IMG/VR virus record: IMGVR_UViG_3300022868_000009
Span: 1 to 64,000 of that record
Reading direction: 5' to 3' (one strand)
Length of the DNA stretch: 64,000 nucleotides
The position numbers and the translations under genes were made by a program. The notes under the pieces were generated by a model. The model ran no database searches. It was not told the origin of the DNA and saw only the letters and a list, made by a program, of their open reading frames with translations. Shown one piece after another: positions 1,788 through 47,771 of this stretch; position 1 is the stretch's first letter; every line of letters starts with the position of its first letter.

Positions 1788-3440
1788 TTATATATTAAAA
1801 TTAAATTTTAAATTACCACTATCATATATTCTATATATTTCTCTTTCTATCATTATTTCATGTTCACTCTTATTTGAATCATATCCTTCACTAACCAAAA
1901 TATCTTTTCTAAAATTAAATCTGTATCTTCTAATACCATCTATTACATAGTGATAGTTTGGTTTAGTTTCATCAACAAAATCAAATCCTAATTTATAATA
2001 TAAATTACCCTTACTCCATGATCTATCAGCATAACTTATTATCTCTTTGAATTTATAATTTTTAATAAAATATTTAAATAATTTACTAGCACCACCAACA
2101 ACACTGACATTTAATTTATTGCAAAATCTCAATAACTCATAAATACCATTTTTACTTTTACCACCCAATGGCTTTCTAGTTTTACCAAAAGTCATTAAAC
2201 TTACCAATTCATTTTCATAATATAAACCAACTTTAACAGAAGAACCAACAAATCCTTGAATATGATTTTCTTTTAAAAATTGTCTAGATTCATTAATATT
2301 AACTTCTTTCAATTCACATTTCCTAGCATATATAATATTAGATTTACTTAGCAAGTTTAATATTCTAGATTTTATTATATCTTGTTTATATTTCCAATCA
2401 TCTTCATAAATATGAATAAGTTGTATATTTTTTTCTAGACATTTAATAGTTTTTTGATAATGATAATCATTTGATTTATTTAATTCATTATGCCAATATA
2501 CACCATTAAATTCAAAAGCTAATTTTAATTCTGGTAAATAAATATCTAATTCATAAGGTTTTAAAATTGTTCTATCGGAAATTATAATTTTATTATCATA
2601 GTTTTCTTTAATAAAATCTTGCAATTGTAATTGCATACCAGAAATATTATAACTATTTACTGGATTGCATTTTGTACATAGAATAGTTTCATATTTTATC
2701 CTATTATAAAGTAATACTGAAGATATCTCAAAATCATGCCCTTTTTCACAATTGAAAATATAAATCCCATTCTTTTTTATTTCTTTAATACCAAATTCTT
2801 TATATTTTTCTAATATATTCTTATTTTTAGTAGTTTTTATTTTTTCTTTAACATTTTCTAATTGAGAAGTATGTTCAACACCATATTTTTCCAAATTATT
2901 TTTAATTGTATTTTCTTTAACTTTATCACTTTTAGAAGAAATATCTGTGCCATATTTTTCAAGACATGTTTCTCTACTCTTTCCTCTTATTTCTTCTGAT
3001 TGCATTAAATATTCAACACCGTATTTTTGTTTATTTGTCTTCTTTTGTATTTCTTGTATTTCTTTATTTTTTAAGTGATGTGTTACACCATATTTTTCAA
3101 GACATGTTTCTTTGATCTTTTCTTTAATTTCCTCTAATTGAAAAACATTGTCAACACCATATTTTTTTTGTAATGTATTTTTTGTTTTATGTTGTTTACA
3201 TTTACTACAGTAATAATTTGTTTCTCCATTCGAAGTTATCTTATTATAATCACTATAAACAATATCTTTTTCAATTTTACAATGAAAACATCTAACTTTA
3301 ATTTTTTGCCTAGATTGTAAAGGTAATTCTGAAATAAATATTTCAATTATATCACCAGATTCACAATCATAGCCTAATTCTTTGTACCTACCCACATTTT
3401 TATTTGATAATTTTATTTTAATTTTCCTGTTGACAATCAT
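1788..3440 (-). CDS. Hef-like putative homing endonuclease (Zn-ribbons, EKYGV repeats, DUF559/Vsr-like nuclease domain)
   Basis: CxxC motifs, repeated KYGV units, ELDIYLPELKLAFEFNGVYWH nuclease motif, C-terminal GGASKLFKYF...ISYADR domain; paralog of 8010-9752. Confidence 0.75.
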   Translation of the reverse strand: MIVNRKIKIKLSNKNVGRYKELGYDCESGDIIEIFISELPLQSRQKIKVRCFHCKIEKDIVYSDYNKITSNGETNYYCSKCKQHKTKNTLQKKYGVDNVFQLEEIKEKIKETCLEKYGVTHHLKNKEIQEIQKKTNKQKYGVEYLMQSEEIRGKSRETCLEKYGTDISSKSDKVKENTIKNNLEKYGVEHTSQLENVKEKIKTTKNKNILEKYKEFGIKEIKKNGIYIFNCEKGHDFEISSVLLYNRIKYETILCTKCNPVNSYNISGMQLQLQDFIKENYDNKIIISDRTILKPYELDIYLPELKLAFEFNGVYWHNELNKSNDYHYQKTIKCLEKNIQLIHIYEDDWKYKQDIIKSRILNLLSKSNIIYARKCELKEVNINESRQFLKENHIQGFVGSSVKVGLYYENELVSLMTFGKTRKPLGGKSKNGIYELLRFCNKLNVSVVGGASKLFKYFIKNYKFKEIISYADRSWSKGNLYYKLGFDFVDETKPNYHYVIDGIRRYRFNFRKDILVSEGYDSNKSEHEIMIEREIYRIYDSGNLKFNFNI

Positions 3441-3565: not shown

Positions 3566-5329
3566 TTAAATAAGTACTCCATTTGTGTCTGTAACCTGTA
3601 TTTCCATGAATTGTTTCCAAGGAAAAAAGCCTATGTCAGCTATGGCATATCTTGAACGAATTAACATTCTTGGTGCCCAAGTTGCCTCTGAAATTAAACT
3701 AATAGACTGAGCCATTAGATAAGGAATGAAAATCAAACCTGGTTGATCAACTGAATTCTTTCTTCCTAAAAAGACTCTGTTATCGTCCCATCTCATATAA
3801 GGATCTACATAGATAGCTATGTTACCAATATTACCCATTGGGTATAATTGACCATTTGTATTCAATTTACCTGCGTTAACTGGATTGATAGTATAACCTG
3901 CAATATCTTGAATAACTGATGCAACGTTTCCGTTAGTTACTAAATATTGAGCTGGTCCTACTCTACCATCTGTTGCGATAAAGTTTGAAGCATTATTGAT
4001 TTTAGCAATAAGTTTTCTTTGGATTGAATGAGTAGTTTCTCCTCCTGGTGCAGGACCGAATCCTGTAGCACCAATATAAGTGTCTACGTCAAAATCAAAC
4101 TTAGGAGTACCTGTTGAATCAACTGGAGTTGTTGCTGAAGCTCTGTTTTGAGCAGCTAATTCTCTAATCTTAGCAACAATTTGTTTAGAAATTGTTTGTG
4201 TAAGTTCGTTAATTAATACTGACTCAAGTTTCTGAACAATGTCCATACCTGTTGAAGCTTTAATATCTTCAATTTGAGTTCTCTTAAGAGCTGATGTAAT
4301 CTCGATATCACCTACTTGTACTGACTTAGTAAATACGTCAGGACCGATAACACCTGGATATGTGTTTTCATCTACTTCTCTTAACATTGGGTTTTTATCA
4401 TCCCATCCTGCTACGAAACCAGGAATATGATCTTCCATTAATGAAACTAGTTCAATAGATGTTGTACCAGTAAAATCATAATTTGTAGTTGTTAATAATT
4501 CAGCACCTTGTAACAATGTTGTTACTGAATCAGTACTAGAAACATCAAATGTGTTTCTTTTAGCTACAGTTGGATAAGCACCTGAAACAGGAGCACCAAT
4601 TTGTTTAAATGTACGGAACATTGGTTTACCATCTATTCTTGAAAAACCTAAAAATTCTAACCAACCTTGACGACCTTCAGTAACTGTAGGTTCAATCAAA
4701 CTTGTTGTAGCATCGAAAGTTCTGGTTTTATCTGTATCATCATAATATGTGTCAACAGTTGTTGTACCTGATATTGAGAAGAACATTCTTGATGTTAATC
4801 CACCAATTGTTTCAGTTACACTTGCTGTTGCCATATCAGCTGCAAGATCAGCTCTTAACAATGTATGTTGAGCTGCGATGTTAGTGTCTATTTTAAACAC
4901 CAATGGTCTTTCGTCTCTATCAGTACCATCTGCATTATTGTCATATTTAAAATCGACGAATAATAATTCGATACGTGGAGAAGAAGAAGGTTTAACTGCT
5001 AATAGGTCAAGACCAATTGTTTGAGCAGCAATCTTCATTGATACTGGAAGTAAGTTTTGTGCGATATCACCTGATCCATCAACTGATTGTTTCACGCCAC
5101 TGTCAGCACCATTCCATACAGCACCTGGAGTTCCCCATGGTGTTGGAGGAGCAACTGCGCCCATACCATTTAAGTTACCAAGTGTTGAATAAGAAATATT
5201 CTCATTCATTTGGTGCATTTCGGCATATTCTGCCATCCATGTTCTCTTGTCTTCATCTTCTACTCTTAGAGTATCTAGAACAGGAGCCCATTTTTTTAAC
5301 GCTTTTGATTTGTCTACTATAAAATTCAT
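3566..5329 (-). CDS. gp23: Major capsid protein (T4 gp23-like)
   Basis: KKWAPVL N-terminus, AAQTIGLDLLAVKP, FIPY, PRMLIRSRYA C-terminal motif; directly downstream of the protease/scaffold gene. Confidence 0.9.
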   Translation of the reverse strand: MNFIVDKSKALKKWAPVLDTLRVEDEDKRTWMAEYAEMHQMNENISYSTLGNLNGMGAVAPPTPWGTPGAVWNGADSGVKQSVDGSGDIAQNLLPVSMKIAAQTIGLDLLAVKPSSSPRIELLFVDFKYDNNADGTDRDERPLVFKIDTNIAAQHTLLRADLAADMATASVTETIGGLTSRMFFSISGTTTVDTYYDDTDKTRTFDATTSLIEPTVTEGRQGWLEFLGFSRIDGKPMFRTFKQIGAPVSGAYPTVAKRNTFDVSSTDSVTTLLQGAELLTTTNYDFTGTTSIELVSLMEDHIPGFVAGWDDKNPMLREVDENTYPGVIGPDVFTKSVQVGDIEITSALKRTQIEDIKASTGMDIVQKLESVLINELTQTISKQIVAKIRELAAQNRASATTPVDSTGTPKFDFDVDTYIGATGFGPAPGGETTHSIQRKLIAKINNASNFIATDGRVGPAQYLVTNGNVASVIQDIAGYTINPVNAGKLNTNGQLYPMGNIGNIAIYVDPYMRWDDNRVFLGRKNSVDQPGLIFIPYLMAQSISLISEATWAPRMLIRSRYAIADIGFFPWKQFMEIQVTDTNGVLI

Positions 5330-8009: not shown

Positions 8010-9752
8010 ATGTTTTTGACAAAAAAATTAGCAGTTACAATAAACCCTTCAAATATCAAACATTTTAAAAAATATTTTGATAATATAGAAGTTAAAGATG
8101 AAATCGTTGTCAACATTGATCAATTAAATAAAGGTAGTCAGTTCATAATTAATGTTCAATGTGATCAATGTGGTCTTAAAAAAGAACTCAAATACAAAAA
8201 TTATTTAGGTTATGGTTACATTAATGGTGATTATTTATGTAGATCATGTAAATTAAAGAAAAATAATCAAGAAAAATATGGGGTTGACAACGTTTTTCAG
8301 CTTGAGGAGACAAAAGAAAAATCTAGAAAAACATGCATGAAAAAATATGGTGTTGAATACATTTCCCAATCAAATAAAACAAAAGATAAAATAAAACAAA
8401 TAAGCATAGAAAAATATGGTGTTAATCATTTTACACAAAATGATAATATTAAAAACAAACAAAAGCAAACAAATTTAGAAAAATATGGTGTAGAAAATCC
8501 ATCACAATCCATTGAAATTAAGAAAAAGAAAGAAAATAATTGGTTAATTAAAAATGATGAAGAGAAGGAATCAATTCTTAAAAAAAGAATTAAAACGAAT
8601 CAAATTAAATATAATTCTGATCATATTTTCACAAATGATTTTTTTAAAGAAAGAATAAAACAAACGAATTTAGAAAAATATGGTGTAGAAAACCCATCAT
8701 TAAACAAGAAAGTATCACAAAAAATAATATCTTCTTTAAAAGAAACACTTTTATCTAAACAATTTGAAAACATTGATAATTTAATAAATGTTCAAGGAGA
8801 TATTTTTTTAATTAAATGTGATGCATGTGGTGATGAATTTAAAATATTAAATAGTCTTTTTTATAAAAGAAGAGAATCAAACACATTAATTTGTACAAAT
8901 TGTAACCCTGTGTCTAAAAATGTATCTGGCAAAGAAATACAATTGTTGAATTTTATTAAAGACAATTACAATGGGACAATTATTGAAAACAGCAAAAAAA
9001 TAATATCACCACTAGAATTAGATATTTATCTTCCAGATTTAAATTTAGCATTTGAATTCAATGGTATCTATTGGCATTGTGAATTATACAAAGATAATAA
9101 CTATCATTCAAACAAGACTAAAATGTGCAATAATAAAAATATAAATCTTTTTCACATCTTTGAAGATGATTGGGTTTATAAACAAGATATAGTAAAATCT
9201 ATGATTATTAACAAAATAAATAGAACAACAAATAGAATATATGCACGAAAAACAACATTAAAAATAATAACAAATAATACATTAATTAAAGAATTTTTAA
9301 ATAGTAATCATATACAAGGTTATGTTGGTTCTTTTATTAAACTGGGATTATTTTATAATGATGATATTGTAAGTTTAATGACATTTAAAAATGTTAAAGA
9401 TGGTTATGAATTAAACAGGTTTTGTAATAAATTAAACACAAATGTAATTGGTGGTGCAAGTAAATTATTTAAATATTTTACAAAAAATTACTCATTTGAT
9501 AAGATAATATCATTCTCGAATAATGATTACTCAGAAGGAAATCTATATAAAACACTAAATTTTAGATTAGATAAAAAAATAAAACCGGATTATTCTTACA
9601 TTAAGAATGATAAAAGGGAACATAAATTTAATTTCAGGAAGAAAAAATTATCTCAAAATTTCAACATTTTAAATAAAACAGAACATGAAATATGTTTTGA
9701 AAATAATATTTATAGAATATATGACAGCGGCAAATTAAAATGGGTTTATTAA
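8010..9752 (+). CDS. Hef-like putative homing endonuclease
   Basis: Same architecture as 1788-3440 (EKYGV repeats, ELDIYLPDLNLAFEFNGIYWH, GGASKLFKYF); lies between the portal and protease genes on the opposite strand. Confidence 0.75.
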   Translation: MFLTKKLAVTINPSNIKHFKKYFDNIEVKDEIVVNIDQLNKGSQFIINVQCDQCGLKKELKYKNYLGYGYINGDYLCRSCKLKKNNQEKYGVDNVFQLEETKEKSRKTCMKKYGVEYISQSNKTKDKIKQISIEKYGVNHFTQNDNIKNKQKQTNLEKYGVENPSQSIEIKKKKENNWLIKNDEEKESILKKRIKTNQIKYNSDHIFTNDFFKERIKQTNLEKYGVENPSLNKKVSQKIISSLKETLLSKQFENIDNLINVQGDIFLIKCDACGDEFKILNSLFYKRRESNTLICTNCNPVSKNVSGKEIQLLNFIKDNYNGTIIENSKKIISPLELDIYLPDLNLAFEFNGIYWHCELYKDNNYHSNKTKMCNNKNINLFHIFEDDWVYKQDIVKSMIINKINRTTNRIYARKTTLKIITNNTLIKEFLNSNHIQGYVGSFIKLGLFYNDDIVSLMTFKNVKDGYELNRFCNKLNTNVIGGASKLFKYFTKNYSFDKIISFSNNDYSEGNLYKTLNFRLDKKIKPDYSYIKNDKREHKFNFRKKKLSQNFNILNKTEHEICFENNIYRIYDSGKLKWVY

Positions 9753-35921: not shown

Positions 35922-35981
35922 TATAATAATTATATTTTCTTCTATATATTAAAATACATATTGATAAATTTTATAATTATG

Positions 35982-36054
35982 TAACGCAGATCAGAATCGA
36001 ACTGACAGCCTTTGGGATATGATTCCAATGCTCTACCTATTGAGCTACTGCGTT
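35982..36054 (-). tRNA. tRNA-Met/Ile2 (CAT)
   Basis: Cloverleaf AACGCAG / GCTC-GAGC D stem / TTGGA-ATCATAT-CCCAA / GTCAG TTCGATT CTGAT. Confidence 0.75.
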
Positions 36055-36385
36055 ATTTATTTTTAATTCTATCTAATTTAATCTTTCGATCAATTCTTAT
36101 AATTTTCTTTTTAACTTCTTCATCTTTAAAATTTGGATGTAAATATAAATTACACATAACATGGAAAACATCTGGATTTATATCACCATTTTCATCTAAA
36201 CATGGTTTTAATATATCCATCATTATATATGTTCTAATAGATGTATAATTATTTTGAAATTCATAACGTTTACAAATAAAATCTATATAACTATCAACAT
36301 CAACAGGTATTATTTTATTCTCAAATTCGTCAATTAAAACATCAATTATATATTCATCATTAAAACCATTACTATCATCCGTCAT
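36053..36385 (-). CDS. Hypothetical protein (RKIKLDRI C-terminus)
   Basis: 110-aa ORF. Confidence 0.6.
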   Translation of the reverse strand: MTDDSNGFNDEYIIDVLIDEFENKIIPVDVDSYIDFICKRYEFQNNYTSIRTYIMMDILKPCLDENGDINPDVFHVMCNLYLHPNFKDEEVKKKIIRIDRKIKLDRIKNK

Positions 36386-36567
36386 CCTTTACTCTACTAA
36401 TTTAACTTTTCTTTGATACTGGTATTAAAATTCTACTATTTTCCATATAACTTATATTTCAAATAATATAATATGTTTAAAAATTTTGTATTTAAAAAGA
36501 ACCGTATCAATAATAAATTAATACGGTTTCAGTAGAGGGTAACTAATATAATTGGTAAGATAAAAAA

Positions 36568-36759
36568 CTATTCTTGTTCCTTTTTAGCTTTAAGGTTACC
36601 CTTAGTTTTTCCTTTTACTTCTTTTTCTTTCTTGTCTGGTCTAACTAATTCTTTCCAGATGTTTTTAGGACAATAATTATATCCGTTTGCTAACTTTTCA
36701 TAAACTTCCTTTTCTTTTACTCTAATTGGAAGGTCGTCTCCGAGTCTCATTGTTTTCAT
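36568..36759 (-). CDS. Small basic hypothetical protein
   Basis: 63-aa ORF. Confidence 0.55.
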   Translation of the reverse strand: MKTMRLGDDLPIRVKEKEVYEKLANGYNYCPKNIWKELVRPDKKEKEVKGKTKGNLKAKKEQE

Positions 36760-36767
36760 AAGCTAAT

Positions 36768-37277
36768 TTAATTAATTTTTATAATATTTGATTTTTCTAT
36801 TTTTATTGATTTTTCTATTTTTAATTTTTCTATTGGTTTTTCTTTTTTAATATTATTAAAATCTATAACCTTCAATGTTATAGTATCTGTTTTTTGTTTA
36901 AATGTAAATTCATGCTCACCTTTACCATAATGGTTTATTTTTACAAATAAATTAAAAACTGTATTTTCATTAATTTGTCTAGATTCATTTACTTTAAAAA
37001 TATATTTAATTTGTTTACCATCAAACTCATATTCAGCATAAAAATCTTTGTTTTTAGAATCAAGATAAACTACAGGTTTAATTTCACCATCATATGCAAC
37101 AAATTCATTTATATCTGCAAATGGACCAACAATTGCAAAACCAACAATAAATATAACTATTGATGCAAATACACACCATGCTTTCGTTAAAGATTTTTTA
37201 GAAAATATTGATAATAAAATAAATATCATTAATAATCCAGGACTAATTATCCATGCAAGTGTTAATAGTAAACTCAT
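36768..37277 (-). CDS. Hypothetical membrane protein
   Basis: 169-aa ORF with two N-terminal TM-like helices. Confidence 0.65.
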   Translation of the reverse strand: MSLLLTLAWIISPGLLMIFILLSIFSKKSLTKAWCVFASIVIFIVGFAIVGPFADINEFVAYDGEIKPVVYLDSKNKDFYAEYEFDGKQIKYIFKVNESRQINENTVFNLFVKINHYGKGEHEFTFKQKTDTITLKVIDFNNIKKEKPIEKLKIEKSIKIEKSNIIKIN

Positions 37278-37354
37278 TTTTTATATTTTTTTAATTTGTA
37301 TAAATATACAAAAATTTCAACTTAAAAAAAATTTTCGATTCTAAATTTTAATTG

Positions 37355-37427
37355 TAGGTATAGATGGATTTGAACCACCGACTTCTACTGTATAAGAGTA
37401 GCACTCTGACCCCTGAGTTATATACCC
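37355..37427 (-). tRNA. tRNA-Ile (TAT)
   Basis: GGGTATA / ACTC-GAGT / CTACT-CTTATAC-AGTAG / GGTGG TTCAAAT CCATC; close paralog of tRNA-Ile(GAT) at 39044. Confidence 0.85.
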
Positions 37428-37804
37428 ATGTCTAATCGTTTAAAAATTTTCCTTTCAATTGTTTCTATCATATAATTAGAATAAAAAAACAAATCGTACA
37501 TATTCTTTACCTCTTTTACATTATAATAATCACTATATTCATATATTTGATAAGTGATGCCTGTACCTGTTTTATAGGATGATGTATAACATATATATTC
37601 TTTATTTTTGTATTTTTTATATCTTACACTATGCAACGTGTTTATTATATAACCATTTTTAATATTTTTATAAACACTTTTAACATTTTTAATATTTTTA
37701 AAATCAAACTCATTAAATATACGTTGAAAAGCATGCTTAGGACTTAAAACCTTATTTTTTTCAAAATAATGTTCAAAACCAATTTGATATTTGTTTTTTC
37801 TCAT
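37418..37804 (-). CDS. Hypothetical protein
   Basis: 128-aa ORF; its 3' end overlaps the tRNA 5' end by 10 nt. Confidence 0.5.
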   Translation of the reverse strand: MRKNKYQIGFEHYFEKNKVLSPKHAFQRIFNEFDFKNIKNVKSVYKNIKNGYIINTLHSVRYKKYKNKEYICYTSSYKTGTGITYQIYEYSDYYNVKEVKNMYDLFFYSNYMIETIERKIFKRLDMGI

Positions 37805-37842
37805 ATTATTTTTGTATGTTTACGACAAAGTTTTCAATACTT

Positions 37843-37924
37843 AATATCTGATTCGAACCTACGTTGGGGCGTTTACCTCATCAGATTAACAGTCTGACAC
37901 CTTCGACCACTCGGACACAGATCA
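37843..37924 (-). tRNA. Degenerate tRNA (GTT anticodon, long variable arm, 3' T-stem strand missing)
   Basis: CCGAGTGGTCGAAGG D arm, TCAGA-CTGTTAA-TCTGA, GTAGG TTCGAAT then directly CAGAT with no CCTAC. Confidence 0.55.
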
Positions 37925-37932
37925 ATTTATTA

Positions 37933-38646
37933 TTACACAATTTCCGATTTTATTGCATTTGGTGGAATATTATCATAAGTATAATATGCTTCAGAATCTT
38001 CGTTAAACTTTGGATCTTTATGTAATTTAATATTATTAATCATCACTTTCATATCTATTTCTAGAATAATATATTCTTCCTTAGAATGAAATTCTTTTTC
38101 TTCTAAGTAATTTTTAGATATTTTTTCATTTCCAAATAAATAAATTCTTTCTGGATGTTGTTCAATAACGTTTTTAGTTTTAGGAACTATACCTTGTTTT
38201 TTAATTTTATCTAAATTTTTTTTATTTGTAACATGATATAATTTTTCTGGTACACCAACTTCAGAATCAAATCTTTTATTTAAATAAACTATGAAATCTT
38301 CATCTTTTTTCCAAACATGTGTTGAAATACTTGTTTTTTTACCATCCATATACTGGTTTGAAATATTATAACCTAAATTATTTACCAAAATCAATAAATC
38401 AGAATAAAATTCTTTTAATCTTTCTCCATAAAAATTAAGTTCAATTCTATCTTTAAGAATATATAATTTGACACTACCTTTTACTTTATGTTTTTTAAGC
38501 AAATCGTCGATTTTTTGAACTGATATATCATAATCAATACTTTTAATAAGACCCTCTTTAATTAAATTATAATTGAAAGACTCTAACATTTTATTATTAA
38601 AGTCATGATGATATCCACAAAATTCAAAATATTTTTTCATATTCAT
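37933..38646 (-). CDS. ADP-ribosyltransferase-fold protein (Tpt1/KptA-like H-motif) with CTS-like start
   Basis: KLYHVT...I.KQGI.PK...RIYLF...ILEI....YTYDNIPPNAI; paralog of 54608-55393. Confidence 0.6.
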   Translation of the reverse strand: MNMKKYFEFCGYHHDFNNKMLESFNYNLIKEGLIKSIDYDISVQKIDDLLKKHKVKGSVKLYILKDRIELNFYGERLKEFYSDLLILVNNLGYNISNQYMDGKKTSISTHVWKKDEDFIVYLNKRFDSEVGVPEKLYHVTNKKNLDKIKKQGIVPKTKNVIEQHPERIYLFGNEKISKNYLEEKEFHSKEEYIILEIDMKVMINNIKLHKDPKFNEDSEAYYTYDNIPPNAIKSEIV

Positions 38647-38677
38647 TATATATTAAATTCATTTTTTTGTTTATTTG

Positions 38678-38750
38678 AGGGGAAACTAGGACTCGAACCT
38701 AGGACACCTTGATTAACAATCAAGTACTCTACCAACTGAGTTATATCCCC
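38678..38750 (-). tRNA. tRNA-Asn (GTT)
   Basis: GGGGATA / ACTC-GAGT / CTTGA-TTGTTAA-TCAAG / CTAGG TTCGAGT CCTAG. Confidence 0.85.
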
Positions 38751-38831
38751 TGGTATAGGGCTAAAACCACTACCCTATCTTTGAAAGTTTACAAATCTAC
38801 CTGTGGTTAGGTCATAGAACTGCTCCTACAG

Positions 38832-38903
38832 TAGTCCGTAGGGGAATCGAACCCCTCTCTCTGGGCTGAAAACCCAACGTCCTGCGCAATAGACGAACGG
38901 ACC
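38832..38903 (-). tRNA. tRNA-Glu (TTC)
   Basis: GGTCCGT / TTGGG-TTTTCAG-CCCAG / AGGGG TTCGATT CCCCT. Confidence 0.85.
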
Positions 38904-38915
38904 ATAAATTACATG

Positions 38916-38997
38916 TAGCGGGTCTAGGAGTCGAACCTAGTATCTCGTGGGTTATGAGCCCAGAATGATTTATAATTATCCATTTCACTCCCCCGCA
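38916..38997 (-). tRNA. tRNA-fMet (CAT), initiator-like, enlarged D loop
   Basis: 1:72 T-T mismatch, GGG/CCC at the base of the anticodon stem, CTCATAA loop, CTAGG TTCGACT CCTAG. Confidence 0.75.
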
Positions 38998-39043
38998 ATA
39001 TAATTTCAATCTTTAAAAATTTATCAATATGTCAAAGAACTTG

Positions 39044-39117
39044 TGGGTATAGATGGATTCGAACCATCGACCTCTACCGTATCAGAGTAGCACTCTAACC
39101 AACTGAGCTATACACCC
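39044..39117 (-). tRNA. tRNA-Ile (GAT)
   Basis: GGGTGTA / GCTC-GAGT / CTACT-CTGATAC-GGTAG / GATGG TTCGAAT CCATC. Confidence 0.9.
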
Positions 39118-39118
39118 G

Positions 39119-39836
39119 TTATAATTTCAACCATTTTCTTATTGAATTATCACTAACACCATATTTTTTACCTACCTGTACATAATTACTTTCTTGAATT
39201 TCTTTCAATAAAATTTCTTTATTAGGTCTTTCTACTTTTCTGCTTTTTTCATGATAACATTCTACACATTGTTTTGATTGTCTTCATTTCATTACCACAT
39301 TCACAATAGTATTTTTTCTTTTCTTTTTTTTGATATTTTTGATATTTCTCTTTTTTTAAATCAGATTTATTAGATTTTGTTTTACTTTTACCACAATATG
39401 TGCTTGTCTGGCTATGACAATTTGGACATAATAATCTAAGATTTTCTAATCTATTATCTAAGTTATCACCATTTATATGGTCCAAATGTAAAGATATAGA
39501 TTTTCTTTTCCATTCATTTATTCCACATTCATCACATTTATATTCTAAAATATCTTCTTCAATAAGACGTTTTTTCAAAGAACCATTATTAGTATAAGTT
39601 GAATTTTCAACTAATATTTCATCCAACGAATAAGTTTTTGAAAAATTCTTAAAATTTTCACCTGTATTCCAACCTTGTCCTGTAAAATGTGATTTATCAA
39701 TATTATATAATTTAACATATTTTTTAATTGTTTTATAATTTCCACCTACTGGTCTTATGTCTAATTTTCTACAAACATCAGCAATTGAAAATGATTCTTT
39801 TACTATTTTCTCTAAATTATCTTTTTCATATTTCAT
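39119..39836 (-). pseudogene. HNH homing endonuclease, frameshifted before its C-terminal Zn/HTH domain
   Basis: LHLDHINGDNLDNRLENLRLLCPNCH in ORF 39249-39836; a shifted frame continues SKQCVECYHEKSRKVERP...KYGVSDNSIRKWLKL* to 39119, matching the C-termini of the other two HNH genes. Confidence 0.75.
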
Positions 39837-39931
39837 ATTAATATTTATTTTATATTATATATTAAAACTTAAAAGCTATATTTTTTAATGTAAATATACG
39901 TTTGATATATTTATATTAACTAAAAATAGTG

Positions 39932-40016
39932 TACCTGGAATGGGACTCGAACCCATACGACCATAAAGATCAATAGATTTTAAGTCTATCTCGGCTACCA
40001 ATTACGACACCCAGGC
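39932..40016 (-). tRNA. tRNA-Leu (TAA)
   Basis: GCCTGGG / ATAGA-CTTAAAA-TCTAT / long variable arm / ATGGG TTCGAGT CCCAT. Confidence 0.9.
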
Positions 40017-40235
40017 ATTTGTGTCTTATTTTATCATTATTAACGAATCCTTTTATAATTCATTCTTTCTTTTTTACCTTTTCTTTCTCTAATCAAATCG
40101 TGTTCAATTTCAATAGCGAATTTTAAGTATAACCACATATCTGAATTAGGTCTTTGTTTACTCATACCTAATCTATATTTAATTATTTTATTTCTAGTTT
40201 TTTTATTCATTTCTTTCCTTTCTTATATTTATTTG

Positions 40236-40315
40236 TACCTCTGGAGAGACTCGAACTCTCACACCTTTCGGCACTGGTGCCTAAAACCAGCGTGTCTACA
40301 TTCCACCACAGAGGC
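40236..40315 (-). tRNA. tRNA-Leu (TAG)
   Basis: GCCTCTG / CTGGT-TTTAGGC-ACCAG / GCCGAAAGGT variable arm / GAGAG TTCGAGT CTCTC. Confidence 0.9.
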
Positions 40316-40324
40316 ATATTTAAT

Positions 40325-40354
40325 AAAAAAGCCAGTTCTTTATTTTGAACTGGC
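40325..40354 (-). terminator. Intrinsic terminator of putative attenuator 1
   Basis: GCCAGTTC-AAAATAAA-GAACTGGC-TTTTTT, ending 10 nt upstream of tRNA-Leu(TAG). Confidence 0.75.
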
Positions 40355-40376
40355 TCTATAATTTAACAATAGTATA

Positions 40377-40442
40377 TTAGAGCCAGTCCCAGATTTCCTC
40401 TAGTAATAAATTAATAATCATATTTATATTTATATTCAACAT
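40377..40442 (-). CDS. Putative leader peptide 1 (MLNININMIINLLLEEIWDWL)
   Basis: 21-aa ORF with an A-rich upstream region; its last codons form the 5' strand of a 10-bp antiterminator. Confidence 0.6.
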   Translation of the reverse strand: MLNININMIINLLLEEIWDWL

Positions 40443-40474
40443 TTTTGTACTTTTTATTTTATTTTATTTTTTAG

Positions 40475-40546
40475 AGGCTCCGACTGAATTCGAATCAGTG
40501 TATCTAGTTTTGCAGACTAGTGCCTTAACCACTCGGCCACGGAGCC
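40475..40546 (-). tRNA. tRNA-Cys (GCA)
   Basis: GGCTCCG / CTAGT-CTGCAAA-ACTAG / U73 discriminator. Confidence 0.9.
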
Positions 40547-40557
40547 ATTATTTTTTG

Positions 40558-40652
40558 TGGGAGCCGAGGGACTCGAACCCCCCTACCGCAAAGTCCATTA
40601 CGACAATTTGTTGACGCGGATCGGTTTTACAGACCGATGCCGTTAGACTCCC
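40558..40652 (-). tRNA. Atypical tRNA-Tyr (GTA): no D arm, about 38-nt variable region
   Basis: Acceptor GGGAGTC/GGCTCCC plus A73; 8-nt linker TAACGGCA; TCGGT-CTGTAAA-ACCGA; GGGGG TTCGAGT CCCTC. Confidence 0.65.
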
Positions 40653-40658
40653 AAACTT

Positions 40659-41354
40659 TTACGACTTATTTTTTATTGTATTTTCATAAGTTTTTAACCA
40701 TTTTCTTATAGCATTATCACTAACACCATATTTTCTTCCAGTAGCAGAATAACCTACTCTTTTTATTTCTATTTTTAATTTTTCATAAGAAGGTCTTTCA
40801 ACTTTCCTGTTGTTTTTTGCTGAACATTTCACACACATTTTTGAATTTTTATGTATTTCATTACCACATTCACAATAATTTTTTTCTTTTTTCTTTTTTC
40901 TATTTTTACCAGCATGTGTATCTAATGTTGCATTACAATTAGGACATACAATCCTCAAATTTTCTATTTTATTATCATCATAAACACCATTCTTGTGATC
41001 CAAAATTAAACTCATTTTTTTACCATTCCATATTTCATCTTGTCCACATATTTCACATTTTCTTTCTTTTAAACCTTCATCATATAATCTTTCTTTTAAA
41101 TGTGTTCTACTAAATGTAGAATTTTCAACTAATATTTTTTCTAATGGTGTCTTATTTTTAGTTGATAAATATTTAATTTTATCATAACATTTAGTAAAAT
41201 GTGTTATATCCAAATCATACAACTCAATATATTTTTTCAATGTTTTAGGGTTACCACCAGCATTTCTTATTCCTAATTTTTCTAAACACTCTTTTTGTGT
41301 TTTAGATGTCTTAACTATTTCTTCAAGATTTTCTTTTGTCCATTTTAATTTCAT
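40659..41354 (-). CDS. HNH homing endonuclease with C-terminal Zn-ribbon/HTH
   Basis: LILDHKNGVYDDNKIENLRIVCPNCN, YCECG, KYGVSDNAIRKW. Confidence 0.85.
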   Translation of the reverse strand: MKLKWTKENLEEIVKTSKTQKECLEKLGIRNAGGNPKTLKKYIELYDLDITHFTKCYDKIKYLSTKNKTPLEKILVENSTFSRTHLKERLYDEGLKERKCEICGQDEIWNGKKMSLILDHKNGVYDDNKIENLRIVCPNCNATLDTHAGKNRKKKKEKNYCECGNEIHKNSKMCVKCSAKNNRKVERPSYEKLKIEIKRVGYSATGRKYGVSDNAIRKWLKTYENTIKNKS

Positions 41355-41414
41355 AAAAAAAAGTTTTCTTTTATATATTAAATCTCGAACCTCGTTTTTT
41401 CATTTTTTCATTTG

Positions 41415-41485
41415 TTGTCCCCAAAGGATTTAAACCCTTACCACAACCTTCAAAAGGTTATGTGCTATCATTACACCAGAGGACA
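41415..41485 (-). tRNA. tRNA-Gln (TTG)
   Basis: TGTCCTC / GTGT-GCAC / TAACC-TTTTGAA-GGTTG / AAGGG TTTAAAT CCTTT. Confidence 0.8.
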
Positions 41486-41512
41486 AAATATAATCTAAAA
41501 CTTATTTTCTAG

Positions 41513-41584
41513 CAGTCCATGGGAGATTCGAACTCCAACCTTTGCCGTGAAAAGCTGTAGTGCTACCATTACACCATGGGGCTA
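41513..41584 (-). tRNA. Degenerate tRNA (TTC loop, unpaired anticodon stem)
   Basis: GGTGTAATGGTAGCAC D arm and GGAG TTCGAAT CTCC T arm are present, but the anticodon and acceptor stems are mismatched. Confidence 0.5.
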
Positions 41585-41590
41585 ATTATT

Positions 41591-42286
41591 CTAAATCTTT
41601 TCGTATTGTTTTTTCCATTTCCTAATAGCATTATCACTAACACCATACTTTCTTCCTACACCACAATAACCTAATTCAACTATTTCTTTTATCAATTCTT
41701 TATATGTTGGTCTTTCTATTTTTCTCTGACTCTTAGATACACATTCTCTACATTTAATAGCAGATTTAGTAATCTCATTTCCACATTCACAATAATATTT
41801 CTTTTTCTCCGTAACGTAATTATATTTACTATTTCCAATATTCTTACCACCGTGTGTTTCTAAACCAGCATTACAATTTGGACAAACAATTCTAAGATTT
41901 TCTATTCTATTATCATTATTTACACCGTTTTTATGATCTAATATTAAACTGATTTTTACATCATTCCATTCTTCACCTTGATTACACAACTCACATTTTC
42001 TTTCTTTTAACCCTTCTTTGTATAATCTATCTTTTAAATTAGTTGTATAAGTATACGTCGAATTTTCTACTAATATTTCTTTTGTTTTTATTTTAGTAAA
42101 ATTACCACCATTACTATGAAACTTAAAATGTGTTATATCTAAATTATAAGTTTTAATATATTTTTTAATAGTTTGCCTATTTCCATAATATGGTTTTAAT
42201 CCTAAATTTCTAGCAACATCTGATAAATTACCAGATTCAGAAACTATTTTACTAAAATACTCTTTTTCATATCTATTTGTTTTCAT
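41591..42286 (-). CDS. HNH homing endonuclease with C-terminal Zn-ribbon/HTH
   Basis: LILDHKNGVNNDNRIENLRIVCPNCN, YYCECG, KYGVSDNAIRKW. Confidence 0.85.
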   Translation of the reverse strand: MKTNRYEKEYFSKIVSESGNLSDVARNLGLKPYYGNRQTIKKYIKTYNLDITHFKFHSNGGNFTKIKTKEILVENSTYTYTTNLKDRLYKEGLKERKCELCNQGEEWNDVKISLILDHKNGVNNDNRIENLRIVCPNCNAGLETHGGKNIGNSKYNYVTEKKKYYCECGNEITKSAIKCRECVSKSQRKIERPTYKELIKEIVELGYCGVGRKYGVSDNAIRKWKKQYEKI

Positions 42287-42365
42287 AAGATTTTATTTTT
42301 ATATATTAAAATCTTCGAACCCAAATTCAAATTAACCAACATTTCAATGAACCTTTATTTTCTTG

Positions 42366-42442
42366 CGGTCCCTACGGGATTCGAACCCGTCTGTTTTTCC
42401 TGAGTGACAGTCAGGTGGCCACGCCAAGCAACCCCAGAGACC
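42366..42442 (-). tRNA. tRNA-Asp (GTC)
   Basis: GGTCTCT / CCTGA-CTGTCAC-TCAGG / ACGGG TTCGAAT CCCGT / G73. Confidence 0.9.
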
Positions 42443-43961: not shown

Positions 43962-44588
43962 TTATAATTCTTTAATTCTTTTTACATAATCAAACCAGAA
44001 TAAATAGTTTTTAACAAACTCTAAACTAGATTCATCATAATTGTTTTTAAATATTTTATATTTTATTTTATCTAAAAATAAGATTTCCTTAATTTTACTA
44101 ATAGACATTTGATTAGAAACTCTATTATCAAAATCTTCCTCGATCATATTTCTATTCTTGATTACAAGTTCTTTTCTCTTTTTATAATTTGCATCAATAA
44201 TTATAATTTCATCGAACATCTTATGAAGACCACCTTTCATCATGGTTGCGCTTTCAGATATAAATAAATCTTTTTTCAATGTGTATTCTGCGGTGTATCT
44301 TCTGTAATAAAACTTACGTATTAAAAAAGGTTTTAATAAACTTTCAAGTTGATTCAATTTTTGTTTATCATTGAATATAATACTTGATAACTTTTGTTTG
44401 TTTATTTCATCATCATTGTAAATATCTTTACCAAATATTTCAATAACGTGTTTTTTTACAGATTTATCATAATATAAAGCCTTTGCTTCATCATCAAAAT
44501 AGAAAACTTCTACATTTTCTATTTCAAATAACTCACAAATATGAGATTTACCGGAACCTATACCACCGGTTATACCAACTGTTTTCAT
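43962..44588 (-). CDS. coaE: Dephospho-CoA kinase
   Basis: MKTVGITGGIGSGKS, YFDDEAK, INKQKLSSIIFND, R...QM; ATG at 44588. Confidence 0.85.
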   Translation of the reverse strand: MKTVGITGGIGSGKSHICELFEIENVEVFYFDDEAKALYYDKSVKKHVIEIFGKDIYNDDEINKQKLSSIIFNDKQKLNQLESLLKPFLIRKFYYRRYTAEYTLKKDLFISESATMMKGGLHKMFDEIIIIDANYKKRKELVIKNRNMIEEDFDNRVSNQMSISKIKEILFLDKIKYKIFKNNYDESSLEFVKNYLFWFDYVKRIKEL

Positions 44589-44589
44589 A

Positions 44590-45627
44590 TTAAGGTAAAA
44601 ATTGATCTGAAAAATCACCATACTTCTTAATGGCTCTTATATCTGTTGAACTTATATATTCATACTCCTTGTCACAAGGAATATAAATTACTTTTAATTG
44701 TGGATACATCTTAGTCATATAAAACATCAATTTATTTTCTGCTTCTAAATCATATCCGTTTCTTAATCCTCTAATTAATGTTATATCACCTGTTTGTGAT
44801 TTTAAGAAATCAGTTAATAATCCATCATAATTTGTTACTTCTCTATACTTTAAAGTATATTTAAGATTATTTAATTCTTTATCAAACTGTTCTAAATTAA
44901 CATTTTTAGAATCATTTTTTCCTTTAGCCACAATAACTTTATCAAAGATTTTTTCTCCTTTTTCTAATATATTTAAATGACCTTTATGAAAAGGATTAAA
45001 TGAACCTCCATATACAGCAATTTTAGGTACTCTATTTTTGATAACTTCTATCAAAGAAGGTATATTATTAGATATAGCTAGACCACCAAGTTCTATATTA
45101 TTAGAAAGAAACTCTATTCTTTTCTCTTTATAAATTGAATAATTTGCAAATTGATATTCTTTCATTATCAATTTTTCTATTCTAATCATCTCTGCCAAAT
45201 TAGTTCTTAATGAAGATGTATCAATATTTGAAAATAATTCTTCTAATTTTGTTTCTGGTTTCATTGTTTCTGTAGCTCTAATTAAAGCAAAAACTTTATC
45301 TTTAAATATAGACATTTCTAATATTGATTTATTCCATATAGAATCTAAATAATTTAAAGATGATTCTTCCATTGAGAGACCATTATCTTTATTTTTACCA
45401 TCAACTAAATTCCAAGGTCTATAATCCCAGTCATGGAATATAGCCGCAATAGTCAAAATATCAAAATCTTTTTCATCTAATTCAAGTTCTTCAATTTTTA
45501 ATAACATTGGTTCCAGGTGATTTTCTAAATTATGGTAAAATCTCCATGGTTGAGTCCAAACTTCAATGACAGTTTTAGTATTTATTTCAATACCATATTT
45601 TTTAAATAATTTATCTACTGATATCAT
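44590..45627 (-). CDS. coaD: HD-domain protein fused to phosphopantetheine adenylyltransferase
   Basis: N-terminal RFYHNLENH...AAIFHD; C-terminal AVYGGSFNPFHKGH, LIRGLRNGYD..E, YISSTDIR. Confidence 0.85.
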   Translation of the reverse strand: MISVDKLFKKYGIEINTKTVIEVWTQPWRFYHNLENHLEPMLLKIEELELDEKDFDILTIAAIFHDWDYRPWNLVDGKNKDNGLSMEESSLNYLDSIWNKSILEMSIFKDKVFALIRATETMKPETKLEELFSNIDTSSLRTNLAEMIRIEKLIMKEYQFANYSIYKEKRIEFLSNNIELGGLAISNNIPSLIEVIKNRVPKIAVYGGSFNPFHKGHLNILEKGEKIFDKVIVAKGKNDSKNVNLEQFDKELNNLKYTLKYREVTNYDGLLTDFLKSQTGDITLIRGLRNGYDLEAENKLMFYMTKMYPQLKVIYIPCDKEYEYISSTDIRAIKKYGDFSDQFLP

Positions 45628-46520: not shown

Positions 46521-47771
46521 CTATTTTTCATTTAAAAAATCTTCATATTGTTTAAGATATTCATCTGCATTTGGTGAAACCTCTAAGATATCAACTATCT
46601 GCGGGATAATTTCCCCTTTTTTCGCAATTGATACTCTAGCACCAGGAAATACTTTATTTTTAATTATATATCCAAGATTATGTAGACTAGCTCTTGAAAC
46701 AATAGTACCATCTAACTCAACTGGTTTTAACATTGCAACACCTGTAAATTCTCCGTCTTTTCCTAAAGTCCAATCAATATCTAATATAACTGTTTCGGTA
46801 TTGTTTGGTGGAAATTTAATTGCTACCATACTTTTAGGATGGTGTGATGTAACACCCATTTTATTTCTTAAAGATTCGGGATATTTTAAAACTATGCCAT
46901 CTAACCAAAATGGACATCTTTTTCTATATTTTTTAAACTCTTTATAGATTTTATCAAAATCATCAATTGATTTAAGCGTCATTATAAATGGTTTATATTT
47001 ATTATTAAATCCATTTTCTTCTAAAATATTCATAGTTTCAATAACTGGATAATTTCCATCATCTGTCACAGCTACCATATCATAAGCTACAAATGTTAAA
47101 TCTTGTATTTGCTTTAAACTATATTCTTCACCACTAATCAAACCACCAATATAATTTCTTGGATTTGATATACAACCTTCTTCTGATTCATCATATTTTT
47201 CAACCCATAAATCTTCTTCAATAACTAACTCACCCCTAATCTGATATTTATGTTCTTTTAAAGATATTTCAGCAGGTACGATATGTCTTACTTTTTCGGT
47301 TCTATCTTTACCATTCTTAGTATCATTGCCTCTAGTTAATGCTTGAACAAACTTACCATTTTCATAAATCAATTCAAAACCATTACCATCATATTTTCCA
47401 CTACATTCTATATATTCTGCCTTTCTTCTAGACAAGAATAAATTTAAAGTATGTAAAGGATAATTATTTTCATCTTCTACTTGTATTTTCTCTAATGATA
47501 ACATTGATGTTGGGTGTGGATATTTAGCTTCATCTTTTTCGTCAATATCAATAATATTAGCAGGTTCTAATCCTAATTTTTTAATTTGTTTAATACTAGG
47601 AAAATCAACTAATTTAGTTACTTCCAAAATTAAACTATGTTTTGTATCTTTAAGTTTTTGTTCAAATTTATCAAATTGTGCATCATTAATGGTAGGTTTA
47701 AATAAAATATAATATTCATACTTATATCTTAAATATTGTTCACACATTTGTTTAATTGTCTTTAAATCCAT
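46521..47771 (-). CDS. ligA: NAD+-dependent DNA ligase (adenylation plus OB domains only)
   Basis: YY...P.I.DAQFD (Ia), MLSLEK, KYDG, TRG, RGE, NPRN, DGIV, AIKF, RASLHN, GEIIPQI; ends at 416 aa without Zn/HhH/BRCT. Confidence 0.85.
   Translation of the reverse strand: MDLKTIKQMCEQYLRYKYEYYILFKPTINDAQFDKFEQKLKDTKHSLILEVTKLVDFPSIKQIKKLGLEPANIIDIDEKDEAKYPHPTSMLSLEKIQVEDENNYPLHTLNLFLSRRKAEYIECSGKYDGNGFELIYENGKFVQALTRGNDTKNGKDRTEKVRHIVPAEISLKEHKYQIRGELVIEEDLWVEKYDESEEGCISNPRNYIGGLISGEEYSLKQIQDLTFVAYDMVAVTDDGNYPVIETMNILEENGFNNKYKPFIMTLKSIDDFDKIYKEFKKYRKRCPFWLDGIVLKYPESLRNKMGVTSHHPKSMVAIKFPPNNTETVILDIDWTLGKDGEFTGVAMLKPVELDGTIVSRASLHNLGYIIKNKVFPGARVSIAKKGEIIPQIVDILEVSPNADEYLKQYEDFLNEK

Follow-up and report, generated by a model that had tools for sequence, protein, structure and literature searches.

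A conserved family of phage tRNA-Tyr-like genes in which half of the D arm lies within the variable arm

An RNA gene of 95 nt in a phage genome raises the question of what has become of a tRNA whose D arm is replaced by only 8 nt. The gene lies in a window of 64,000 nucleotides, positions 1 to 64,000 of the IMG/VR record IMGVR_UViG_3300022868_000009. A preliminary description of the locus, made from the sequence alone, pointed out a tRNA-Tyr-like RNA with intact acceptor, anticodon and T arms and a variable region of roughly 38 nt, argued against random decay, and proposed a D-armless tRNA of novel architecture or a tRNA mimic or decoy. The comparison with relatives described below reveals a conserved family of phage RNAs, so far unannotated, in which the D 5' strand and the D loop have been moved into the loop of the variable arm.

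A tRNA-Tyr-like RNA in a phage tRNA array

The window is the first 64 kb of a viral contig of 344,634 bp with 25% G+C that is estimated to be about 48% complete. It encodes a major head protein, a prohead protease and a portal protein and thus belongs to a large tailed phage. ARAGORN finds 35 tRNA genes in the contig, ten of which form a minus-strand array interleaved with HNH endonuclease-like ORFs; the RNA under study lies in this array (Table 1). Two tRNA(CUA) genes are present in the contig, but reading through TAG or TGA adds little ORF length, which gives no support for stop-codon recoding, and genetic code 11 was used throughout. No phage-encoded TyrRS was found in the incomplete contig with the PF00579 profile. 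A canonical class II tRNA-Tyr is encoded elsewhere in the contig.

What was observed at the locus in the preliminary description is correct, including coordinates and strand. The RNA consists of a 7-bp acceptor stem with one G.U pair, the 8-nt connector UAACGGCA, a 5-bp anticodon stem with a CUGUAAA loop, 38 nt between the anticodon stem and the T stem, a GGGGG/CCCUC T stem with a UUCGAGU loop, the acceptor 3' strand and A73. No local hairpin can form between the acceptor and anticodon stems, so that the D arm of the canonical cloverleaf, a hairpin between positions 9 and 26, is lacking at its usual place. The Rfam tRNA model (RF00005) aligns the RNA end to end at 29.5 bits against a gathering score of 29 (E 2.7e-4 in a 401-nt search), with the D arm deleted (5 nt instead of 15) and 35 nt inserted in the variable region. 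The RNA is not listed in the gathering scan of the whole window, it is missed by ARAGORN, and its copy in Bacteroides phage crAss001 is neither annotated nor reported by an RF00005 scan at E <= 0.01, so that recognition by score and by tRNA finders is left undecided. A Plastid-ycf2 match in the Rfam search falls on the antisense strand of the neighboring tRNA-Cys, far below threshold, and is spurious. ARAGORN reports no tmRNA in the window.

Table 1 Features of the RNA and of its surroundings; window coordinates unless stated otherwise. RNA position i corresponds to window coordinate 40653 - i
Feature	Coordinates	Strand	RNA nt	Observations
Whole rewired tRNA-Tyr(GUA) gene	40558-40652	-	1-95	Rfam tRNA match over model positions 1-71
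Acceptor stem 5' strand	40646-40652	-	1-7	Pairs with RNA 88-94; all 7 pairs show changes on both sides; 98.2% of cells paired
U8-A9-A10 connector	40643-40645	-	8-10	Invariant in 40/40 aligned sequences; proposed equivalents of U8 and A21 (or A21/A22)
CGGC, equivalent of the D-stem 3' strand (positions 22-25)	40639-40642	-	11-14	Pairs with RNA 49-52; pair sets CGGC/GUCG, CGGC/GCCG, CGUC/GGCG, CAUC/GAUG, CAGC/GCUG, CACC/GGUG, CACU/GGUG, CGAA/UUCG, CAAC/GUUG
Anticodon arm, 5-bp stem and CUGUAAA loop	40621-40637	-	16-32	Anticodon GUA at 40628-40630; all 5 pairs compensatory; loop identical in all 46 members
Variable-arm stem 5' strand CCGC	40616-40619	-	34-37	Pairs with RNA 64-67; 100% paired, 2 pairs compensatory; CUGC/GCAG, CCGC/GCGG, CUGG/CCAG, CUCC/GGAG, CCAC/GUGG, CUCA/UGAG, CCCC/GGGG
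Linker L1, variable stem to relocated D 5' strand	40605-40615	-	38-48	Contains conserved C-A-A-A-U; AAAU in 46/46, preceding C in 42/46; length 7-11 nt; role unknown
GUCG, relocated equivalent of the D-stem 5' strand (positions 10-13)	40601-40604	-	49-52	Pairs with RNA 11-14
D-loop-like strand UAAUGGACUUU	40590-40600	-	53-63	U53-A54 proposed as U13/A14, G57-G58 as G18-G19; U and A in 46/46, first G in 46/46, second G in 43/46
Variable-arm stem 3' strand GCGG	40586-40589	-	64-67	Pairs with RNA 34-37
Conserved U-A-R	40583-40585	-	68-70	Precedes the T arm
T arm	40566-40582	-	71-87	100% paired, 4 of 5 pairs compensatory; loop UUCRANU in 46/46
Acceptor stem 3' strand and discriminator A73	40558-40565	-	88-95	A73 (40558) in 45/46 members; no CCA encoded
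Canonical tRNA-Cys	40474-40546	-		11 nt downstream of the RNA
HNH homing-endonuclease-like ORF	40659-41354	-		Stop codon 6 nt upstream of the RNA; weak Pfam HNH matches; similar to annotated phage HNH endonuclease genes; probably incidental
Array of ten tRNA genes	35981-42442	-		Interleaved with HNH endonuclease-like ORFs
ORF in the array	37933-38646			Weak, sub-threshold match to the Tpt1/KptA RNA 2'-phosphotransferase family
Canonical class II tRNA-Tyr	316635-316719 (contig)
Rewired class-I-sized tRNA, anticodon UCG	165749-165828 (contig)	-		Fills a 96-nt gap between tRNA-Thr and tRNA-Pro; outside the window
Copy in crAss001	4141-4235 (crAss001 record)			Fills an unannotated 170-nt gap between tRNA-Lys and tRNA-Phe; no adjacent HNH gene

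Conservation and covariation of the relocated D stem

Pattern scans of IMG/VR viral contigs, each of which left different parts of the RNA free, revealed the same architecture in more than 80 contigs of 4 to 640 kb and yielded 46 distinct sequences. Some of the invariant positions were fixed in individual search patterns, so that divergent members may have been missed, although each position was left free in at least one other search. All members carry the GUA anticodon, also those found with patterns that did not fix it; no Tyr-type member with another anticodon was found, the one hit being an AT-rich false positive. A scan of one genome for each of 185,579 prokaryote species returned only two true copies, identical in sequence, on MAG contigs that carry tRNA arrays. 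The family is therefore in effect restricted to phages. In every locus the gene lies inside a co-oriented tRNA array at tRNA-like spacing. In 10 loci a canonical tRNA-Tyr is nearby, and in one of them (L028) the canonical copy shares its acceptor stem, and a near-identical T arm, with the rewired copy.

Among cultured phages, a blastn search found the RNA in crAss001 and its relatives, with no annotation under the match. Neither the 25 annotated tRNAs of crAss001 nor an RF00005 scan of its whole genome include a tRNA-Tyr, and the rewired RNA is the only tRNA-like gene with a GUA anticodon in an otherwise nearly complete tRNA set. RNA-seq contigs of two studies cover the crAss001 copy collinearly, without joints or base differences. 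These assembled contigs show neither ends, strand nor levels of the RNA, DNA carry-over is not excluded, and sequencing runs holding the window's own sequence were not looked for. Large protein searches and a metagenome scan were not included, since the question concerns an RNA and the viral and genome scans gave enough.

To determine the structure, 40 distinct sequences collected without any requirement for D pairing were aligned with MAFFT without reference to a structure (mean column identity 77%), and pairs were counted for five helices that include a pseudoknot. Seven further sequences had been selected with D pairing required and were not used in these statistics. Standard pairs were formed in 98.7% of the cells, in contrast to 70.7% in shuffles and at most 52% when the partners were slid by 1-3 columns, and 21 of 25 pairs showed changes on both sides. 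With compensatory changes in every helix, the architecture shared by the 46 homologues is far more than chance. The long-range helix between nt 11-14 of the connector and nt 49-52 in the loop of the variable arm was 100% paired in 40 of 40 sequences, with nine different complementary pair sets and compensatory changes in 3 of its 4 pairs. Mutual information ranked these columns with the classical helices and revealed no further tertiary pair; no counterpart of the 15-48 Levitt pair covaried. The minimum free energy structure (-35.6 kcal/mol, z = -2.1) instead extends the anticodon hairpin with CGG/CCG (nt 11-13 with 34-36) and pairs the variable region differently, but this alternative shows no compensatory change and breaks in 5-7 sequences, whenever either side varies. 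Of the two pairings in the variable region that were proposed beforehand, CCGC/GCGG is supported by covariation. GTC/GAC can form in this one sequence but is not conserved, as most relatives have UUU in place of GUC and the G of GAC is the conserved second G of the D-loop-like GG.

The origin of the pieces is indicated by canonical relatives. In a canonical phage tRNA-Tyr (L068), UAA-CGGC-A is the end of the D loop including A21, the D 3' strand and A26. In canonical tRNA-Tyr genes of the same arrays, the D 5' strand is followed by U-A-G-U-G-G, which carries A14, R15, G18 and G19. The rewired RNA has exactly these two modules in swapped order. The acceptor 5' strand is followed by U8-A-A, the D 3' strand, the A26 equivalent, the anticodon arm, the 44 equivalent, the variable stem 5' strand, an 11-nt linker with the conserved CAAAU, the D 5' strand, U-A-N-U-G-G, 2-6 nt, the variable stem 3' strand, U-A-R, the T arm, the acceptor 3' strand and A73. 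The equivalents of positions 26 and 44 are A.C, A-U, G.U or U-A. The acceptor stem, the anticodon arm with its 7-nt loop, U33 and a purine at 37, the 4-bp variable-arm stem and the T arm are standard. The D arm is thus not absent; its 5' half has been transplanted into the variable-arm loop, which is enlarged to about 25 nt. The D stem encloses the anticodon arm, giving one long D-plus-anticodon helix, and crosses the 4-bp variable stem to form a pseudoknot.

In the course of checking for members without D pairing, the same rewiring was encountered in class-I-sized RNAs of 77-82 nt in phage tRNA arrays. Their order is acceptor stem, a 7-9-nt connector that starts UA(N)C, anticodon arm, 3-5 nt, a strand complementary to the connector, U-A-..-G-G, a conserved GUUGAAAAY connector and T arm. 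A scan for the latter connector found it in at least 118 contigs, from which 48 distinct sequences with the anticodons GAU, UAU, UCU, UCG and ACG were parsed. With one fixed pairing register, 90% of the D positions pair, in contrast to 63% in shuffles (maximum 73% in 1000), and the pair sets include CGA/UCG, CAG/CUG, CGG/CCG, CGU/ACG, CCG/CGG and CAU/AUG. One such gene lies in the phage studied here (Table 1). These RNAs have no variable stem and their fold is nested, without a pseudoknot. The Tyr RNA is the class II version of a more general phage design.

Function of the rewired RNA and alternative explanations

The interpretation offered by the preliminary description is supported in part. 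Its view that the RNA is not decayed but represents a non-canonical tRNA-Tyr architecture holds. A normal D arm in the relatives, which would have betrayed a recent deletion, had been named as evidence against it, but all relatives share the 8-nt connector and the large variable region. The designation D-armless is not supported, and the comparison with the tRNA-like domain of tmRNA does not hold, because the RNA has a full anticodon arm and no tmRNA is called.

More likely than not, the RNA is a working tyrosine tRNA with a rewired core. U8, A14 and A21 form one base triple in tRNA and G18-G19 dock on the T loop, so that joining U8 almost directly to A21 is spatially reasonable. Since the nucleotides of the classical tertiary core are kept (U8, A14, A21, G18, G19 and the T-loop UUCRA; the G19 equivalent in 43 of 46 members), the RNA should still fold into an L shape, although no three-dimensional model was built and in two members only 2 nt separate the GG from the variable stem, which constrains the geometry. 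In this view, the RNA would be transcribed with the tRNA array, trimmed by RNase P and 3' processing, provided with CCA by the host, charged by the host TyrRS, which could read A73, the GUA anticodon and the long variable stem, and used to read UAY codons. The synthetase, EF-Tu and ribosome of E. coli accept a tRNA that lacks the D arm (PMC11551756). The bacterial TyrRS identity includes G1-C72 with A73. The window copy has both, but the 1-72 pair is G-C in 35, C-G in 10 and U-A in 1 of 46 members, which does not settle whether the family conforms to this identity. The sequence comparison thus demonstrates the conservation, the covarying structure, the array context, the restriction to phages and the status of the RNA as sole tRNA-Tyr of crAss001, and the RNA contigs add weak evidence of expression, whereas processing, charging and decoding are inferred; no direct evidence exists for processing, CCA addition, aminoacylation or ribosomal use. 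The phage studied here does not need the rewired copy simply to supply Tyr decoding, since it also has the canonical tRNA-Tyr.

The selective reason for the rewiring is a matter of speculation; escape from tRNA-targeting host defenses is plausible but untested. Septu and Retron-Eco7 PtuAB cut tRNA-Tyr in the variable loop, and phage tRNA-Tyr with a distinct variable loop resists or neutralizes them (PMC13096335, PMC12673091, PMC11555353), so that rewiring may remove or hide the features that host anti-phage nucleases use on tRNA. As tRNAs with Ile- and Arg-type anticodons are rewired too, a Tyr-specific nuclease cannot be the whole reason, and a more general escape from structure-reading tRNA nucleases is more likely. 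Another possibility is escape, at the DNA level, from homing endonucleases that recognize the conserved D-arm gene sequence.

Among the alternatives, a decoy or sponge survives best but is unlikely. In this scenario the RNA folds as described but is not used in translation; it titrates a host nuclease directed against tRNA-Tyr, or another tRNA-binding factor, and so protects host or canonical phage tRNA-Tyr. [quoted passage not shown] Arguing against this possibility, a decoy has no need for an invariant anticodon loop and an intact acceptor stem in 46 of 46 members and A73 in 45 of 46; in addition, crAss001 has no other tRNA-Tyr, and the rewiring is shared by tRNAs with Ile- and Arg-type anticodons. 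A mimic or decoy is therefore not excluded but is less likely than a decoding tRNA.

A truly D-armless tRNA or mimic, with an unpaired connector as in mitochondrial tRNA-Ser(AGY) and a variable region that forms only its own hairpin, is very improbable. The lack of a local hairpin and the Rfam alignment speak for it, but it is contradicted by the covariation of nt 11-14 with nt 49-52 and by the conserved D-loop signature next to that strand. It is also very unlikely that the RNA is a precursor that is cut and re-joined to a canonical tRNA-Tyr, as with permuted or split tRNA genes. Permuted genes occur in a red alga (PMC3978253), and the Tpt1/KptA family, weakly matched by an ORF in the array, is linked to tRNA splicing. 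However, the segment order itself implies three cuts and three ligations instead of one circularization, the rearranged RNA already satisfies all pairings, and the RNA contigs of crAss001 show no joints, although contigs drop rare forms and leave the presence of such processed forms undecided. A decaying tRNA-Tyr pseudogene, damaged by a deletion in the D arm and an insertion in the variable arm that are perhaps linked to the adjacent HNH endonuclease gene, and suggested by the failure of ARAGORN, the borderline Rfam score, the adjacent HNH ORF and the canonical tRNA-Tyr elsewhere, is contradicted by the same architecture in more than 80 contigs with compensatory changes in all five helices and by the absence of an adjacent HNH gene from most copies; the one circumstance that would have revived it, homologues that are recent copies of a single sequence, does not apply.

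Relation to other tRNAs and significance

The closest known RNAs are canonical bacterial or phage class II tRNA-Tyr, including the anti-defense tRNA-Tyr of T5-like phages. They share the GUA anticodon in a CUGUAAA loop, A73, a stem in the variable arm, a standard T arm and location in phage tRNA arrays, with clear homology of every segment and with D-strand and D-loop motifs identical in canonical neighbors, and phage tRNA-Tyr with altered variable loops are known counter-defense tools (PMC11555353, PMC12673091). They differ in the position of the D 5' strand and D loop and hence in the D stem and the pseudoknot. Mitochondrial tRNAs that lack the D arm, such as metazoan tRNA-Ser(AGY) (PMC4013460), likewise have no local D hairpin and a short connector after the acceptor stem. 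Some models of these tRNAs extend the anticodon helix with connector pairs, and here too the helix stacked on the anticodon stem is built from the 5' connector and nucleotides 3' of the anticodon arm. In the phage RNA, however, the pairing partner and a complete D-loop signature are retained, nothing has been lost, the RNA is longer and not shorter than a normal tRNA, and it occurs in phages of bacteria that use standard translation factors.

Circularly permuted and split tRNA genes (Cyanidioschyzon, Nanoarchaeum; PMC3978253) also differ from the canonical segment order, but their rearrangement is repaired by RNA processing at bulge-helix-bulge motifs and the mature tRNA is canonical. The phage gene shows an internal transposition, and the mature RNA probably keeps the new topology. 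Pseudoknotted tRNA mimics, such as the 3' tRNA-like structures of plant viruses and the tRNA-like domain of tmRNA, reach a tRNA-shaped fold with non-canonical strand connectivity, yet they place the pseudoknot in the acceptor arm or lack an anticodon arm and are parts of larger RNAs, whereas the phage RNA is a free-standing gene in a tRNA array. The rewired class-I-sized phage tRNAs share the transposition to the 3' side of the anticodon arm and the UA(N)C start of the connector but use a different 3' connector. Rfam 15 has no dedicated family, and full-text literature searches, which covered few subscription journals and are no proof of novelty, found no description of this architecture. What is new relative to known tRNAs is the strand topology.

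According to a farther-reaching reading, which is possible but tentative, phages of bacteria carry a whole class of functional tRNAs with a new topology, comprising Tyr and tRNAs with Ile- and Arg-type anticodons, that are charged and used by the ordinary bacterial translation machinery and evolved because the new wiring makes them resistant to structure-reading anti-phage tRNA nucleases. The cloverleaf is among the most conserved RNA designs, and all known bacterial tRNAs are stated to adopt it (PMC11551756). A conserved natural tRNA family that keeps the tertiary-core nucleotides but changes the strand connectivity would show that the L shape can be reached by another wiring, and it would offer a natural test case, present in a cultured phage-host pair, of what TyrRS, RNase P, EF-Tu, modification enzymes and the ribosome really require of a tRNA. 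The finding also links to phage-host conflict, in which phage tRNAs act as counter-defense against tRNA-cleaving immune systems. As the genes are missed by ARAGORN and sit at the threshold of Rfam, phage tRNA counts would need revising, with the "missing" tRNA-Tyr of crAss001 as an example.

Rewired and other non-canonical tRNA-like sequences

A second, larger group of rewired tRNAs of class-I size, with the anticodons GAU, UAU, UCU, UCG and ACG, was identified at the viral loci L013, L022, L026, L029, L136, L140 and L317-L432. In this group the D 5' strand and the D loop lie 3' of the anticodon arm and are followed by a conserved GUUGAAAAY connector. The scan hit more than 118 viral contigs. 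One copy, with the anticodon UCG, lies in the phage studied here, outside the window, in a gap between tRNA-Thr and tRNA-Pro.

Two further gaps between tRNA genes of the same phage were found to contain tRNA-like features. The 139-nt gap between tRNA-Glu and tRNA-Ile holds a tRNA-like sequence with a CUCAUAA anticodon loop (CAU), a good T arm, an imperfect acceptor stem and about 26 nt in the D region, which is called neither by ARAGORN nor by Rfam. A gap of about 120 nt between tRNA-Lys and tRNA-Ser, outside the window, has a perfect 7-bp acceptor stem and a T arm that enclose about 85 nt. This stretch begins with AACAAAUAG, the motif of the linker in the Tyr family. The gap sequence may be another non-canonical or intron-bearing tRNA. 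In Bacteroides phage crAss001 (loci L234, L224, L237), an unannotated 144-nt match to the tRNA model displays normal acceptor, D and T arms and an insertion of about 70 nt at the anticodon region. A second, 91-nt sequence is a 'tRNA-OTHER' annotated as a pseudogene.

Locations of the features (G000:C1, contig of the phage studied here)
Feature	Sequence	Position	Strand
Rewired class-I-sized tRNA (UCG)	G000:C1	165749-165828	-
tRNA-Glu/tRNA-Ile gap holding a tRNA-like sequence (CAU)	window	38904-39042	-
tRNA-Lys/tRNA-Ser gap with acceptor stem and T arm	G000:C1	115303-115424	+
tRNA gene, CUA anticodon	G000:C1	112614-112688	+
tRNA gene, CUA anticodon	G000:C1	140629-140701	+
ORF with weak Tpt1/KptA match	window	37933-38646	-
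Small HNH-like ORF	window	39249-39836	-
Small HNH-like ORF	window	40659-41354	-
Small HNH-like ORF	window	41591-42286	-
Homing-endonuclease-type ORF	window	1788-3440	-
Homing-endonuclease-type ORF	window	8010-9752	+
ORFs beyond the tRNA array	window	43962-45627 and 46521-47771	-
Unannotated match to the tRNA model, crAss001	NC_049977.1	96453-96596	-
'tRNA-OTHER', crAss001	NC_049977.1	101478-101568	-

CUA anticodons, and ORFs in and around the tRNA array

Two tRNA genes outside the window carry a CUA anticodon of the amber-suppressor type and are labeled 'Pyl' by ARAGORN. Reading TAG through adds little ORF length anywhere in the contig, so there is no clear sign of recoding. A 237-aa ORF inside the tRNA array has a weak, sub-threshold Pfam match to the RNA 2'-phosphotransferase Tpt1/KptA family (E 7e-4, 20 bits against a cut-off of 26) and no PHROG match. 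Just beyond the array lie ORFs for a dephospho-CoA kinase-like protein, a cytidylyltransferase-like protein and an NAD-dependent DNA ligase.

Homing-endonuclease-type ORFs and multiple tRNA-Tyr genes

Homing-endonuclease-type ORFs are frequent. Three small HNH-like ORFs are interleaved with the tRNA genes, and two ORFs of about 550-580 aa flank the head-protein, protease and portal genes. In a recent paper, a homing endonuclease next to phage tRNA genes was linked with the amplification of tRNA-Tyr to escape Septu (PMC13096335). Among the viral loci with rewired tRNA-Tyr, L073 carries two different rewired tRNA-Tyr genes in one array. In locus L028, the rewired copy is flanked by two canonical tRNA-Tyr genes, one of which shares its acceptor stem and has a near-identical T arm, which suggests local duplication or gene conversion.
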